NCBI GenBank assembly: GCA_020891255.1
Contig: BQFW01000012.1
Coordinates: 868,001-932,000, forward strand
Direction: 5' to 3'
Source of the DNA: Entomortierella parvispora E1425
Taxonomy: Eukaryota; Fungi; Mortierellomycota
DNA: 64,000 nt
Positions 29,715 through 36,308 of the stretch are shown here, piece after piece. The translations under genes were made by a program, and so were the position numbers. Within the stretch, counting starts at the first letter, position 1. The number at the start of each line of letters is the position of its first letter. The notes under the pieces are model-generated. The model worked only from the letters and a program-made list of their open reading frames with translations, was not told where the DNA came from and did no database searches.

Positions 29715-30114
29715 AATGTCTTTTCTGTTTCAGTTTTATTTGCTCGCGGAGAGCGGTTGGTGCACTAAAGAATGGGAAGCGGAGAAAAATGAAGTGAACT
29801 AGGTCTGTTACTACGGAACTCACCGGTGTGGCGCGACACGACGCTATACTATTCAAACACAAGGTAAAGGAGGTCAATGGCCATGACTACCCAGATCAAA
29901 GAAATGAAATCAAGATTTTACTTCTCTACATGCAATAATAGATGGAAAGACTTCTTATACTATGAAATGGAGTATGGACATGCTAAATGAATGGATAATA
30001 TGATACAATGGGGAGTGTGGGGGTGGAGGATGGACTATGTAATGCAACGGAAATGCGTCTGCGTTTCTTTCTTCCTTCTCTTCCTTCCTTCTCTTTCTCT
30101 ATTTCTCCTTCGAT

Positions 30115-31727
30115 TTAAGCCCAAAGAGCAATAACAGCCATCGAAAGGGCTCCCATCCAGACAGCAACAAGATAAGAAGCCTTGCTTGCACGGGTCTCGG
30201 TCCTGAAGCGCTCAGAGTAAAGGATATCACCTCCCAAAAGCGTAACAAAGGCAGTGTAGAGCAAGACACCGCAGGCAATCGAGTCTGTGACACCCATGAT
30301 GATCAAATTTTCAACCGAGTTGGCCTTGTAGCTCGAGCGCATGCCCATGCCAATGCCCACACCCAAGGGAGTCACCAAGGCAAAGATGGCGACCAAAAGA
30401 ACGGGCAACCACTTGCGGCGGGGGAAGGACAGATCAGCAATTCGGGATCCCAAAGCGACTCCCTCAAAGAACTGATGGAAGCAGATCGCGATGGTCATGG
30501 CCACAAATTCAGAGCCAGCCAAAGTACCAAGGGCAATGCCAATAAAGACGGAATGCAAGGCAATACCAACCTCGAGCATATAGGTCGAAACCTTGGTGGA
30601 CACACCTGGACCGCACTGCAACAATGTCAAACCATGGGCGTGACTGCAGCCATCGTTTTCATGACCAGAACCCTGACGGGATCCAAGACCGGAGGAAGCG
30701 GGCGACTCATGATGTCCATGCTTGTGGTCATGGTCATGGTCCCAAGCATCGTGAGCACCATGGGAAGCAGCGGTGGCAGAGGCATCGACAACAGCAGCAT
30801 CACTGGCTTTCTTCTTGGACATAGCCTCAACATTCAGGACCACAGTGGAGGCCAAGAACTCAATGACGAGCATGGTCAACCCAGAGACCATCATGATCAA
30901 GGGTGCATAACCAGGATAGTCATCCGTCCAAGCCTTGGAAAGACAAGGGTGGGTCAACGAAAACAGAGCCTCGGGCATGATATGGATAAAGGCCACAGAC
31001 AAAACGACACCAGCTCCAAAGTATTTTCCGAGTTGAACCGCAAATCTTGTGCGGCTGTTGTCACGGATCATCATGGGCAAGGCACAGCCGAAAGCGGCGA
31101 CAACAGTGAGCACCAGCAAGGCCACAATGTGGTGCCAGATAACATACTCGCCATGGTCGTGGCTGTGAGCCTCGCAGGTTCTGGAAGGACAAAAGAAAAG
31201 AAATCAGATAATGCCTTCAAGAGAAAAAGGTCATATTTTAAACCCAATTGCTAGAAACTGTACCTGGCGGGTCCATGAGAGTGTCCAGCCTCAGAATGAT
31301 CATGGTCGTGGTCATGGTCGGCATGGTCATGATCTTCCTCAACCTTTCCTTCTTCATGGGTGTGGTCATGGTCATGGTCATGATCGGCATGGTCGTGATC
31401 CTCCTCAGCTGCTCCTTCCTCATGAGTATGGTCATGATCATGGTCATGGTCGTGGTCAGGAGTTGTTGGAGATGAAGTAGGGCTGGCAATTGGTGCAACT
31501 ACGGTAGTTGTGGTAGGATGTTCATGGTCGTGGTCGTGGTCATCGTGGTCATGGTCTTCGCCAGCCCTCTTTTGAATAGAGAGATAATCAGTGTTGATCT
31601 TTGAAGCTGAGGCCAACTGAGGATTGAGGGTGTTTGCAGGGGTTGAGGCAGAAACAGATGAGAAGGACGAGGAGAGAGCAACAAGGGTCGCCACAGAGGC
31701 AAGGGTACAGGTCAACGATAACCTCAT
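30115..31727 (-). CDS. ZIP-family zinc transporter A with signal peptide and His/Asp-rich N-terminal ectodomain; exons 31727-31264 and 31180-30115
   Basis: TM motifs FGAGVVLSVAFIHI, EVGIALHSVFIG and FHQFFEGVALG. Phase-2 GT-AG intron fuses the His-rich ORF to the ZIP ORF in frame (PAR-TCEAHSHDH). Confidence 0.92.
31299..31430 (-). repeat. Two 66-nt coding repeats encoding HTHEEGxxEEDHDHADHDHDHD
   Basis: Units 31430-31365 and 31364-31299 within a larger (DH)n array spanning about 31270-31560. Confidence 0.9.
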
Positions 31728-31789
31728 GATGGTATACTGGGGATGAGTAAGGGAAAGGGGGAGACGTGAGAGCGATGAGTTGATTACCG

Positions 31790-31959
31790 GGGAACTGCCA
31801 ACCCCTGGGTATTTAAGCTAGTTGGCCGTTGCGATAGCGAGACAACGTGCGCGAGTGCGGGGTCGCTGATAACCACCAGGGTACTCGATAGATCATCAAA
31901 GATCGTCCGCCATGGTGGCAATGACCTCTAGTTGGGTGGCCATGGGTGTACCCTACCGG
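31790..31959. promoter_or_regulatory. Candidate zinc-response and shared motifs upstream of ZIP A
   Basis: GGGAACTGCCAACC at 31790-31803, ACCACCAGGGTACTC at 31872-31886 and GTGTACCCTACCGG at 31946-31959. Related motifs recur upstream of ZIP B. Confidence 0.55.
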
Positions 31960-33365: not shown

Positions 33366-34061
33366 ATGTACGAAGACCCAGTGGCACAGAGCTTTGACTC
33401 GCACGGTCACTTTCCCTACCGTCATCACCATCCCAGCAGCAACATCAATCCTGCATCTCCGTCCTCCTCCTCCTCTCTGGGCCATTATCAAGGCCAGCAA
33501 GATGTCAACCAGCAGCCATCACAGGACCCTGAGGATCAAGCCCTCTCTCGCTTACACCAACACCAATTGCTGATCCAACTCCGTCTAGAAGTCAACGCGC
33601 TCAAGACTCAGATCTCGCAGCTCGAGTTGTTGAAGCAACAGTTGGTCCAGCAACAATCGATGATGCCCGAAGCCGAGTTCGCGCAAATGATGGATCAGTT
33701 CTCGAGGACCTCCGTGTCACTCTTGACGGTTGGTCAGCCCACAAGCCATTTCGGAGACCAGCATTCGATAGGAGGGGGAGGTGGCGGCGGCGGAGGGAGC
33801 TTAGGAGGTGGCATTGGAATGCCCATGATGGAACGGTTGCAGGAGAAGCTAAGGAGCATGACTATCCAACAGTCCAAACAACAGCAACTACAGTACCAAC
33901 AACAACAATTTAATCTTTTGGAGTTAGGATCTGATCCTGCTACTGCAACAGGGCCATCAGCGACCGTGAGAAGGGATCCCGTGCGAATGGAGCAACTTAG
34001 CATAGAAGAAGATTTGCGCGATTTGGAGCGACGAATGCGTTCAATACAATTGATTCGATAG
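33366..34061 (+). CDS. Hypothetical Gln/His/Gly-rich protein with coiled-coil segments (231 aa)
   Basis: Single ATG-initiated ORF with coding-like composition. Preceded by a probable 5' UTR intron (about 33106-33224) and CA/C microsatellites, followed by a T-rich 3' region. No family recognised. Confidence 0.7.
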   Translation: MYEDPVAQSFDSHGHFPYRHHHPSSNINPASPSSSSSLGHYQGQQDVNQQPSQDPEDQALSRLHQHQLLIQLRLEVNALKTQISQLELLKQQLVQQQSMMPEAEFAQMMDQFSRTSVSLLTVGQPTSHFGDQHSIGGGGGGGGGSLGGGIGMPMMERLQEKLRSMTIQQSKQQQLQYQQQQFNLLELGSDPATATGPSATVRRDPVRMEQLSIEEDLRDLERRMRSIQLIR

Positions 34062-34320: not shown

Positions 34321-35684
34321 TTAAGCCCACTTGCCAATCACGGCCATGCAAGCGGATCCGAGCCACAAGGCAATGAACTGGTTCACCTGGTGCTTCTTGC
34401 TCGACTCTCTGAATGCTATGTTGGCATTCATTTCAGTGCACATGAGCTGAACCATAGCCGTGTACAACAGAATACCGGCTGAGCAAGAGTCAAAAACACC
34501 TTGGACGATCAAAGCAGTGACAGAGTCGCCGTTGTAGGTAGAACGGATACCAATTCCCAAAGCAATTCCGAGGGGGGTACTGCAGGCGAACCAGGCCGAG
34601 AGCAACCAGGGAGCCTTTGCGGAACTTTTGAACTTGAGGGAGGCAATACGTCCACCAAGGGCCACGCCCTCAAAGAACTGGTGGAAAAGCAAAGCAATCA
34701 GAAGCGAGATAAAGGCAGAACCGACGGTGGTGGCGAGGGAGATGCCGATGATGACAGAGTGGAGGGCGATACCAAACTCGAGGATGTAGGTTCCAATGAC
34801 ACGGGATCGCTTCTCCCTCTCCTCTTTCTCGAAGATGAGGGTGGCATCATCTTCGCCAGAGGGAGAGCTTTCGATACCAGCGCCAGGACCGTGGTTATGA
34901 TGGGGTGCCTGCTGGTTGTGCTTGTTGATCAACAGGATATCACCGCCATGGACATGACCATGGTGGACACAGGGGTCGACTTCTTGAGCCGAGGGCACGG
35001 GGGCGAAAGGCGCAACAGTAACGCCTTCGAGGCTGTCACTCTCCCCATCCTTCTGGCGATGCTTCTTCTCATCCACATCACTGTCAAGGTCATGCAAGCG
35101 ATCCATGGCATGCACCTTGCCCGACTGCTGTAAACCTTCAACGGCATCAAGGCCCTTGTTGGCAAGGCCAGATTCCTCGTTCTGTCGGTGGGGTGCAGTT
35201 CTTTGGAAGAATCTTTGGGTGGCGACAAACTCGAGCAAGTGGAGCATCAGGGCAGCCAACATGGCAATCAAACCAGCCCAGGCACTGTAACCTTGATCTT
35301 GGAAAATGGCGGGCAATGAAGGATCAGTGAGACTTTCAAAGGCCGAGGGCAACATGTGGATGAAGGCCGTAGCCAAAATGACGCCAGAACCGAAAATGCG
35401 AGTCGTTTGGATGACGCTATGGATCTTTGCAGTGGTCTTTGCATTGAAGCGAGTGAAAGTAAACAGGATGGGAAAAAGGACTTTTGAAGGAGTTGGACAA
35501 TACGAAACGAAGAGATATGAAAAATAGTGTTAGTGGCACGATAAAACTAAGGTACTTGTTTACTCCCACCTTCCAGTGACTTACCTCCTAAGGCACTTGC
35601 AGCCATGTTAGCAAAGAGTCCGCCAACGTGGAGCGGGACATCGTAGTCGGCAACAGCTGTGAGCAGGGTCGAGTTGTCAGACAT
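34321..35684 (-). CDS. ZIP-family zinc transporter B (Zrt1/2-like, short N-terminus); exons 35684-35585 and 35480-34321
   Basis: YDVPLHVGGLF, FGSGVILATAFIHM, EFGIALHSVIIG and FHQFFEGVALG. GTAAGT..AAG intron in frame. Confidence 0.92.
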
Positions 35685-35944: not shown

Positions 35945-36308
35945 CTTTATAGCCCTGGCTCCCTGCAGGGGAAGGGGTGAAAATCGGAGCAATGACCACA
36001 CCCAGGGCTACTCTGTATGCGTGTACCTTCTTGGCTATGGCCGCCAGGGTACACCCCTGGATCTCTTCCAGTGGCGGCGTGCGCTGCTGGGTTGCAAACA
36101 TGGGCGCACTGCTGATTCGTGGCCGTGTACCCTACTGGTCACAACGCCCATCTTGCATCCCAGGGTTGCGTACCTTTCCCCTCCCTCTTCGTGTGTTCAG
36201 CGAGAATCAAGTTACACAACATCCGAAGAAAGGAAAGATTAGTGACAGCGCGCCGGGGAAACATCCAACCGTGGGCGATTGGCAATTCCCGGGCGATTGG
36301 CAATTCCC
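35945..36308. promoter_or_regulatory. ZIP B promoter: TATA box plus repeated candidate zinc-response motifs and an 18-bp tandem repeat
   Basis: TATAAAG on the minus strand at 35951-35945. ARGGTACAC at 36021-36029, 36046-36054 and 36125-36133. GGGCGATTGGCAATTCCC twice at 36273-36308. Confidence 0.55.

Follow-up and report, generated by a model that had tools for sequence, protein, structure and literature searches.

The closest described counterparts of the gene considered here are the zinc importers ZrfC of Aspergillus fumigatus and CaZrt1 (Zrt101) of Candida albicans, both of the alkaline type. The N-terminus of ZrfC, which is long, extracellular and furnished with zinc-binding motifs, is required where zinc is scarce and conditions are alkaline (PMC4343018, PMC9785309), and CaZrt1's extracellular tail, at the N-terminus, spans residues 1-183 (PMC3386192). 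Synteny of zincophore and transporter around a shared divergent promoter is reported to have arisen in Dikarya, and no PRA1 orthologue was detected in zygomycetes (PMC3386192). Here we analyse a two-exon gene of Entomortierella parvispora E1425, a member of the Mortierellomycota, which lies on the minus strand at positions 31727-30115 of a 64,000-nucleotide stretch of contig BQFW01000012.1 (forward-strand positions 868,001 to 932,000; hereafter the window). As in ZrfC and CaZrt1, a core of ZIP subfamily I (ZIP-I) is preceded by a long N-terminus that, to judge from its sequence, would be extracellular and zinc-binding (PMC4343018, PMC9785309, PMC3386192). Those proteins have Cys/His motifs and are accompanied by a divergently encoded secreted zincophore (Pra1 or Aspf2), whereas the tail found here is a Cys-free poly(Asp-His) sequence with a Thr/Pro stalk and a conserved LxKR pro-site. 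By analogy, the best-supported reading is that the protein works like ZrfC and CaZrt1. More specifically, and with moderate confidence, we regard it as a ZIP-I importer of zinc at the plasma membrane, which is probably induced when zinc is short and has a built-in, disordered Asp-His tail that would gather metal outside the cell.

Read directly from the sequence, the coding region starts with an ATG at 31727 and ends with a TAA at 30117-30115. Exon 1 (31727-31264, minus strand) supplies 154 codons plus 2 nucleotides, and exon 2 (30115-31180, minus strand) the complete ZIP core, with eight predicted transmembrane (TM) helices, and the stop codon. The intervening intron (31263-31181, minus strand) is 83 nucleotides long and of the form GTACAG...CAG, with GT...AG ends and a CTGAT branch-like site about 27 nucleotides 5' of the AG; it lies in phase 2 within the codon of Arg155, split as AG and A, and preserves the reading frame across the junction. 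The two exon products were searched separately, and a word-index protein search with the exon-2 product retrieved a public 509-residue GenBank protein of E. parvispora (P0001; assembly GCA_020891255.1), annotated as "solute carrier family 39 (zinc transporter), member 1/2/3", in which the exon-1 product comes first, the exon-2 product last and a single Arg between the two. The splice model put forward by an earlier reading of the window made from its letters alone (the sequence-only reading) is thus identical to the public annotation, and this record was used wherever a full-length protein was needed for folding or searching. The position and phase of the intron, inside the Arg codon of GPA-R-TC, are identical in four loci, namely this gene, a paralogue on another contig of the same genome (L002), and genes of Gamsiella multidivaricata (L003) and Actinomortierella ambigua (L004), and 24 annotated homologues all have the same junction peptide, GHSHGPARTC. 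Since the exon-2 frame contains a stop at 31206-31204 and no ATG ahead of TM1, the ZIP core could not be translated with its first helix unless spliced to exon 1. As judged from these comparisons, exon 1 is most probably spliced to the ZIP core, as the sequence-only reading had proposed; a search for sequencing runs that cover 30000-31900 of the window listed none of RNA. Database entries that show the core alone (P0005, P0006 and P0020, for example) begin within the intron or at the exon edge, and by the same comparison are unspliced or partial, truncated gene calls. The family is easily mis-annotated: in the public models of Mortierella antarctica (P0021) and M. alpina (P0023) the Asp-His exon is read in the wrong frame, giving Met/Ile/Thr-rich N-termini.

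The identity of the core, also anticipated by that reading, is secure. The exon-2 product matches Pfam PF02535 over profile positions 5-323 of 323 (E 2.1e-58; 198.5 bits, the cut-off being 35.1). An AlphaFold model, for which 55 homologues were used, shows eight long helices with a predicted local distance difference test score (pLDDT) above 90, and in a Foldseek comparison with the PDB its top ten matches were all entries of BbZIP (probability 1.00, template-modelling scores, or TM-scores, of 0.51-0.68 on the target), the best being 6pgi and 5tsa at 0.67-0.68; a phmmer search of the core against PDB sequences found no match. The metal-site motifs in TM4 (LHSVFIGIALG, of the form H-S/N-x-x-x-G) and TM5 (FHQFFEGVALG, H-x-x-x-E-G) are both of the ZIP-I type; in the 55-sequence alignment H364 is invariant, and H390 and E394 are nearly so. 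TM5, which reads HQFFEGVALG, lacks the LIV-1 signature HEXPHEXGD, and the nearest relatives are all fungal, plant or protist ZIP-I proteins. The gene product is accordingly a member of ZIP subfamily I with a predicted BbZIP-type fold. A second His-rich stretch, in the cytosolic TM3-TM4 loop (residues 298-342, 30619-30753, minus strand), is disordered in the model and is the usual variable loop of ZIP proteins.

The distinctive part of the protein precedes TM1, and its elements, all on the minus strand, are given here in order. A putative signal peptide occupies residues 1-27 (31647-31727), with an M-R start, a hydrophobic core and a V-S-A cleavage-type end. It was judged by inspection (Arg2, hydrophobic residues 3-21, V-S-A before Ser28), with a hydropathy segment at 3-25 and a predicted helix at 6-23, and the M-[RK]-hydrophobic start is conserved in 24 homologues. 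There follows a variable pro-like segment (residues 28-52, 31572-31646; pLDDT below 50), poorly conserved in sequence and of similar length in most homologues, 23 of 25 of which have a dibasic site at residue 48-58. It ends at the dibasic pair K53-R54, within I-Q-K-R (residues 51-54), a candidate Kex2 cleavage site at 31566-31571, exactly where the sequence-only reading had placed it. By sequence comparison, a [KR]R pair occurs at the aligned position in 25 of 25 full-length homologues from across the Mortierellomycota, 2-6 residues before the first His and mostly with L, I or V at P4, so that the pattern of a Kex2-type proprotein is present: signal peptide, pro-segment with a dibasic end, and an aliphatic residue at P4. 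The invariance of LxKR amid a freely varying segment argues for selection on a Kex2-type cut that would leave the tail attached.

Beyond the dibasic pair come an Asp-His block (residues 58-70, 31518-31556) with the conserved consensus dHDHdhP, and then a Thr/Pro/Ser/Ala spacer (residues 71-90, 31458-31517) whose length among homologues ranges from 0 to about 35 residues and which, from its composition, is likely to be an O-glycosylated stalk. Residues 91-147 (31287-31457), the most variable part among homologues, hold the remaining Asp-His blocks and acidic HTHEEG linkers. The sequence-only reading had recognized such blocks and the spacer and counted three of the former; there are four runs, one before the spacer (residues 58-70) and three after it (91-100, 110-122 and 132-144). 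The last three represent a tandem duplication at 31296-31452, with a period of 66 nucleotides, 2.4 copies and 83% matches, as found by Tandem Repeats Finder and by comparing the units codon by codon. The tail closes with the membrane-proximal motif GHSHGPA-R-TCEAHSHDHGEY (residues 148-167, 31144-31286), which is split by the intron and at least 90% conserved in 24 homologues, and at which pLDDT rises. Overall, 24-25 homologues agree without exception in the dibasic pair, the first Asp-His block, GHSHGPARTC and the WHHI at the start of TM1, and differ in the pro-segment and spacer.

The composition of this region is extreme. Exon 1 contributes 27 His and 24 Asp in 154 residues, and His makes up 27% and Asp 23% of the 100 residues that follow KR. 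TCEAHSHDH adds three His, which brings the total in the 155 residues that precede TM1 to 30, the highest number among the 354 ZIP homologues compared. The His/Asp-rich ectodomain is, as had been suggested, tethered to the transporter and encoded wholly by exon 1. The description of it as zincophore-like did not hold up: exon 1 has no significant Pfam family (one sub-threshold match at E 0.035 and 14 bits, against a cut-off of 27.7), and residues 24-155 are predicted by AlphaFold to be disordered, with pLDDT below 50, so that it is better described as a His-rich tail than as a Pra1-like fold. The defining feature of Pra1, a hexamer with a zincin-like fold, is an HRXXH site (PMC12663325). Tail and Pra1/Aspf2 have in common His-rich flexible regions and a presumed extracellular capture of zinc for a ZIP importer; exon 1 differs in having no family match and no predicted fold, and in being covalently attached to the transporter, and HRXXH was not found in its sequence.

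A further feature that may link tail and core is a pair of Cys residues. Cys157, just ahead of TM1, and Cys234, in the first extracellular loop, occur together in 149 homologues and are jointly missing from 18 members of a single clade, a pattern which suggests that the two form a disulfide in the other members. A Fisher test on the pair gave a tiny p-value that was discarded as not meaningful, because all 18 double-negatives belong to that one clade. The members of that clade are, in all 18 cases, tail-less ZIP paralogues of Mortierellomycota, including a neighbour of the present gene in the window (34321-35684, protein P0077).

From these features a course of events can be proposed. The signal peptide, which would be cleaved, would take the nascent protein into the endoplasmic reticulum, and in the Golgi a Kex2-type protease would most likely cut off the pro-segment at I-Q-K-R, placing the mature N-terminus just ahead of the first Asp-His run. 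That the tail would lie outside the cell is argued by the signal peptide and by the N-terminus of ZIP proteins, which is known to face outwards. The remaining 100 residues or so would form a disordered, strongly acidic chain, consisting of an Asp-His block, a Thr/Pro stalk and three more blocks, which ends at the mouth of TM1 in the invariant GHSHGPARTCExHxHDHGEY, a motif probably held to the first extracellular loop through a disulfide between Cys157 and Cys234. Imidazole and carboxylate groups along this chain would bind Zn2+ weakly and exchangeably, raising its local concentration, and ions would then be passed down to the proximal His cluster and on to the transport site formed by TM4 (HSVF) and TM5 (HQFFEG). 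The proximal motif, with its His cluster and Cys157, is likely to be the point of hand-off, a role proposed by analogy with ZrfC. Binding would be strongest at neutral to alkaline pH, with His deprotonated and free zinc scarce.

Zinc-responsive control of the gene is suggested by its promoter. A candidate zinc-response element, AGGGTACAC (31946-31954, minus strand), lies 227 nucleotides upstream of the ATG, its function being proposed from its sequence and placement. The 9-mer ARGGTACAC occurs 4 times in the window against 0.59 expected, and its three further copies, at 36021-36133, are upstream of the ZIP gene next door. It is found as a single copy at -149, -306 and -283 of three other DH-ZIP genes (that is, genes for Asp-His-tailed ZIP proteins; L002 at about 5852, L003 at about 5695 and L004 at about 5718) and nowhere else in those loci of 13-14 kb, making four loci in three genera in all. 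The footprinted core of the ZafA site of Aspergillus is CARGGT (PMC6070888), with which the 9-mer shares ARGGT (PMC6070888). ARGGTACAC may be the zinc-response element of Mortierellomycota that resembles the ZafA/Zap1 core, and its placement supports, while not proving, zinc-responsive control of the gene.

The surroundings of the gene were inspected for a partner of the Dikarya type. Its divergent upstream neighbour (33366-34061, plus strand) encodes a Gln-rich, coiled-coil-like protein of 231 residues, with no signal peptide and no Pfam match; it was considered as a Pra1-like partner and rejected as Gln-rich and without a signal peptide. Whereas ZrfC and CaZrt1 have a secreted zincophore in this position, the divergent neighbour here is thus a non-secreted Gln-rich orphan, and the trait of a promoter shared with a zincophore is not seen. 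Beyond it lies the second ZIP gene already mentioned (34321-35684, minus strand), whose 419-residue product lacks the tail and both Cys. The order of tail-less ZIP, Gln-rich orphan of 220-231 residues and DH-ZIP is common to Entomortierella and Gamsiella (L003, 891-3523). On the other side of the gene, a purine-only, GA-rich tract of about 50 nucleotides (30065-30114 of the window, minus strand) starts about 7 bases past the stop codon, in the presumed 3' untranslated region.

The same layout was found in 25 of 25 full-length homologues from Mortierellomycota, drawn from Entomortierella, Gryganskiella, Mortierella, Podila, Linnemannia, Gamsiella, Modicella, Benniella, Haplosporangium, Actinomortierella and Lunasporangiospora, with tails of 46-103 residues and 11-27 His. 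These proteins form a monophyletic clade on a long stem, with full support (100) in the Shimodaira-Hasegawa-like approximate likelihood-ratio test (SH-aLRT). The suggestion that the module could be gained, lost or expanded as a unit stands in part: the survey shows that the repeats vary in number, and no member of the clade lacks exon 1, which speaks against gain or loss of the whole. The paralogue in the same genome (L002, 6001-7631, on BQFW01000015.1) encodes 503 residues with a core 73% identical and a poorer tail, having 17 His before TM1. Gryganskiella likewise has one rich and one poorer DH-ZIP copy; the duplication may predate the split of Entomortierella and Gryganskiella, the tree not settling the order.

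Outside the phylum the picture depends on the search. With the N-terminal region alone as query, a word-index search matched only ZIP proteins of Mortierellomycota, a result that reflects the limit of such searches, since an exhaustive search showed similar architectures elsewhere. In the latter, covering 1.84 billion representatives, the Mortierellomycota clade collapses to two clusters at 472-645 bits, followed by a 153-residue fragment (84% identical to the C-terminal part, 266 bits) and then by the next protein at 218 bits. Among its best 150 matches, 131 newly found representatives could be aligned over TM1; in 53 of these the stretch before TM1 is at least 40 residues long, and it contains 5 or more His in 31 and 11 or more in 12. 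In Calcarisporiella thermophila the order is signal peptide, EKR, His block, Ser/Thr/Pro spacer, second His block and GHSHG; in Conidiobolus and Syncephalis, H-G and runs of His come after RR; Basidiobolus, Tieghemiomyces and Dispira, a sample that includes Dimargaritales, have His motifs of the HGP/HAGP type; and the chytrids Rhizophlyctis and Batrachochytrium and the oomycete Aphanomyces have Asp-His runs ahead of the conserved Cys. In Mucorales and Kickxellales the signal peptide and the Cys are mostly retained, and the tails are acidic or Ser/Thr-rich and devoid of His. The short His-rich N-termini of other early fungi and of an oomycete share with the present protein a signal peptide, a dibasic or HGP motif, His/Asp runs, the conserved Cys and (D/E)-Y ahead of TM1, and differ in being shorter and in having 5-15 His in the named taxa (up to 18 in other relatives) against 30 here. 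Nor is their His-rich part on its own exon: of the outgroup loci checked, that of Tieghemiomyces is intronless and that of Basidiobolus has its intron elsewhere, so that the exon boundary at the junction of tail and core is specific to the Mortierellomycota clade among the loci compared. We know of no functional description of any of these short His-rich N-termini. Genomes of bdelloid rotifers (Rotaria, Adineta and Didymodactylos) also encode ZIP-I proteins (P0162, P0138, P0177, P0190 and others), which score among the early-fungal ones and adjoin the Basidiobolus/Syncephalis group in a quick tree, and which could represent contamination or horizontal transfer.

The relation to Dikarya is less direct. 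ZrfC and CaZrt1 themselves were not among the matches, and the word-index searches gave no Dikarya protein among the best 120. The exhaustive search did not return the named ZrfC or CaZrt1 and did return Dikarya relatives with Cys/His ectodomains (in Marasmius, Collybia, Rhodosporidiobolus and others), which combine Cys/His motifs with Asp-His runs and in one case have GHSHGP before the pre-TM1 Cys. These relatives form a clade separate from that of Mortierellomycota (SH-aLRT 95-98), the named ZrfC and Zrt1 being compared here by description and not by alignment. Several claims of the sequence-only reading are unsupported or overstated against this background. That typical fungal Zrt proteins lack such a region is at odds with its presence in every full-length homologue from Mortierellomycota and with related N-termini in other early fungi. 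The contrast that was drawn with CHxH-type transporters is weakened by the Dikarya relatives that carry both kinds of motif, one of them GHSHGP as well. An independent, built-in solution is likewise not what the comparison indicates: N-termini with a signal peptide and (Asp-His)n runs occur in Calcarisporiella, Conidiobolus, Basidiobolus, Dimargaritales, Syncephalis, chytrids and Aphanomyces, and a long extracellular zinc-binding N-terminus was already a hallmark of ZrfC and CaZrt1 (PMC4343018, PMC3386192). As far as the sequences indicate, the present gene is an extreme case of a widespread design and not an independent invention. A single old origin of the His-rich tail, with lineage-specific growth and loss, is the simpler reading of its wide spread and of the exon structure of the outgroups; the deep nodes of the ZIP tree are unresolved, and this reading stays short of proof.

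Two further systems resemble the protein in part. The LIV-1 ZIPs (ZIP4, ZIP6, ZIP7 and ZIP10) also have a signal peptide and a large N-terminal extracellular domain, often with long His-rich runs. Their ectodomains are proteolytically processed. They belong to another ZIP subfamily, recognized by the HEXPHEXGD signature, whereas TM5 reads HQFFEG here; and LIV-1 ectodomains contain folded domains, according to the account of the crystal structure of the ZIP4 ectodomain (PMC4915132), in contrast to the ectodomain described here, which is predicted to be fully disordered. In bacterial zinc-uptake proteins such as ZnuA, a disordered His-rich, acidic stretch beside a transport system is thought to gather zinc (an analogy drawn in PMC3386192); the proteins and their transport machinery are unrelated, and the resemblance is functional only. 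In the open-access literature we found no paper that describes a tail of the Mortierella type, or a Kex2-type pro-site on a ZIP importer.

Several observations weigh against the interpretation of the protein as a zinc-shortage-induced importer with a metal-gathering tail. The splice donor, GTACAG, is off-consensus; the C of CARGGT is absent from the promoter motif in three of the four genes; and the co-occurrence of the two Cys amounts to a single evolutionary loss. The His count varies more than 2-fold among relatives, so that a large number of His is not a requirement for function. The metal is not proven, since Ni, Cu and Co are also bound by Asp-His runs and iron is the cargo of some ZIP-I members, IRT1 among them. 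The tail could instead be a sensor or regulator, whose loading with zinc reports the external supply and triggers gating, oligomerisation or endocytosis of the transporter. ZIP4 and yeast Zrt1 leave the cell surface when zinc is abundant, the extracellular domains of LIV-1 proteins modulate transport, and an invariant proximal motif adjoining TM1 could couple binding to the helices. Set against this, the number of His and the length of the tail vary widely among close relatives (11-27 His), which fits a capacity better than a tuned sensor, and the precedent of ZrfC points to uptake; we judge a sensing role unlikely, if deserving of attention. Alternatively, the tail may serve another metal or protection, by capturing or screening Cu, Ni, Fe or Mn or buffering toxic metals, on a core that may itself carry a metal other than zinc. 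His/Asp repeats are not specific for zinc, and ZIP subfamily I includes iron and manganese carriers; but the nearest named relatives are all annotated as zinc transporters (names assigned by homology), the promoter motif resembles a zinc-response element, and the gene adjoins a second ZIP gene with the same motif, all of which make a non-zinc or protective function rather improbable.

The remaining alternatives concern the attachment of the tail. Retention of the intron, or a cut at the Arg of GPAR-TC, which is invariant, might set the tail free as a soluble zincophore that would come back to the transporter. In all four loci the unspliced frame stops 1-4 codons past the donor and would give a signal-peptide protein ending in ...GHSHGPAR; ectodomain shedding is known for mammalian ZIP4, ZIP6 and ZIP10; and a released tail would find a place in zygomycetes, where PRA1 was not detected (PMC3386192). 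The early stop carries no weight, however, following automatically from a phase-2 intron that starts GTAA, and for this reason it was not accepted as pointing to a secreted isoform by design; a lone Arg after Pro-Ala is, moreover, a poor Kex2 site. Release therefore earns little credence, and marginally less attaches to its more elaborate form, of one gene with two products, in which the spliced message would give the importer with its tethered tail, and intron retention or GPAR-TC cleavage a free poly(Asp-His) scavenger that docks on the proximal motif. If true, this would constitute a self-contained system of zincophore plus receptor in a lineage without a detected Pra1 orthologue. Finally, the gene model could be an artefact: exon 1 would then be a small gene in its own right, for a His-rich peptide that is secreted, and the ZIP core would be expressed alone, as some database entries depict it. 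Those entries are the unspliced or partial calls described above, which start in the intron or at the exon boundary; a stop lies just upstream in the exon-2 frame, which has no ATG before TM1; and the GPA-R-TC junction and intron phase are kept in four loci, the junction also in 24 annotated proteins. An artefact of this kind is hardly to be credited, and an importer with a tethered, metal-gathering tail is the reading we retain.

Extracellular His-rich tails of ZIP proteins matter in pathogens, as with the tail of ZrfC and virulence-related zinc uptake, and in the human LIV-1 proteins, and have been treated as special cases. The comparison made here indicates that the design of a signal peptide followed by an Asp-His tail is common, and probably old, among fungal ZIP-I importers; the present gene, itself already annotated, is a strong example of it, and the finding opens no new category of mechanism. 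Mortierella-type fungi have the most elaborate form of the design, with a conserved pro-peptide site, a stalk of the glycosylation type and repeat blocks that grow through tandem duplication. They offer a simple, non-pathogenic model of how a disordered metal-binding tail feeds a transporter, and of why a polytopic transporter would need a pro-peptide, and also bear on the ways in which soil fungi exchanging nutrients with plants and bacteria acquire zinc without a zincophore of the Pra1 type.

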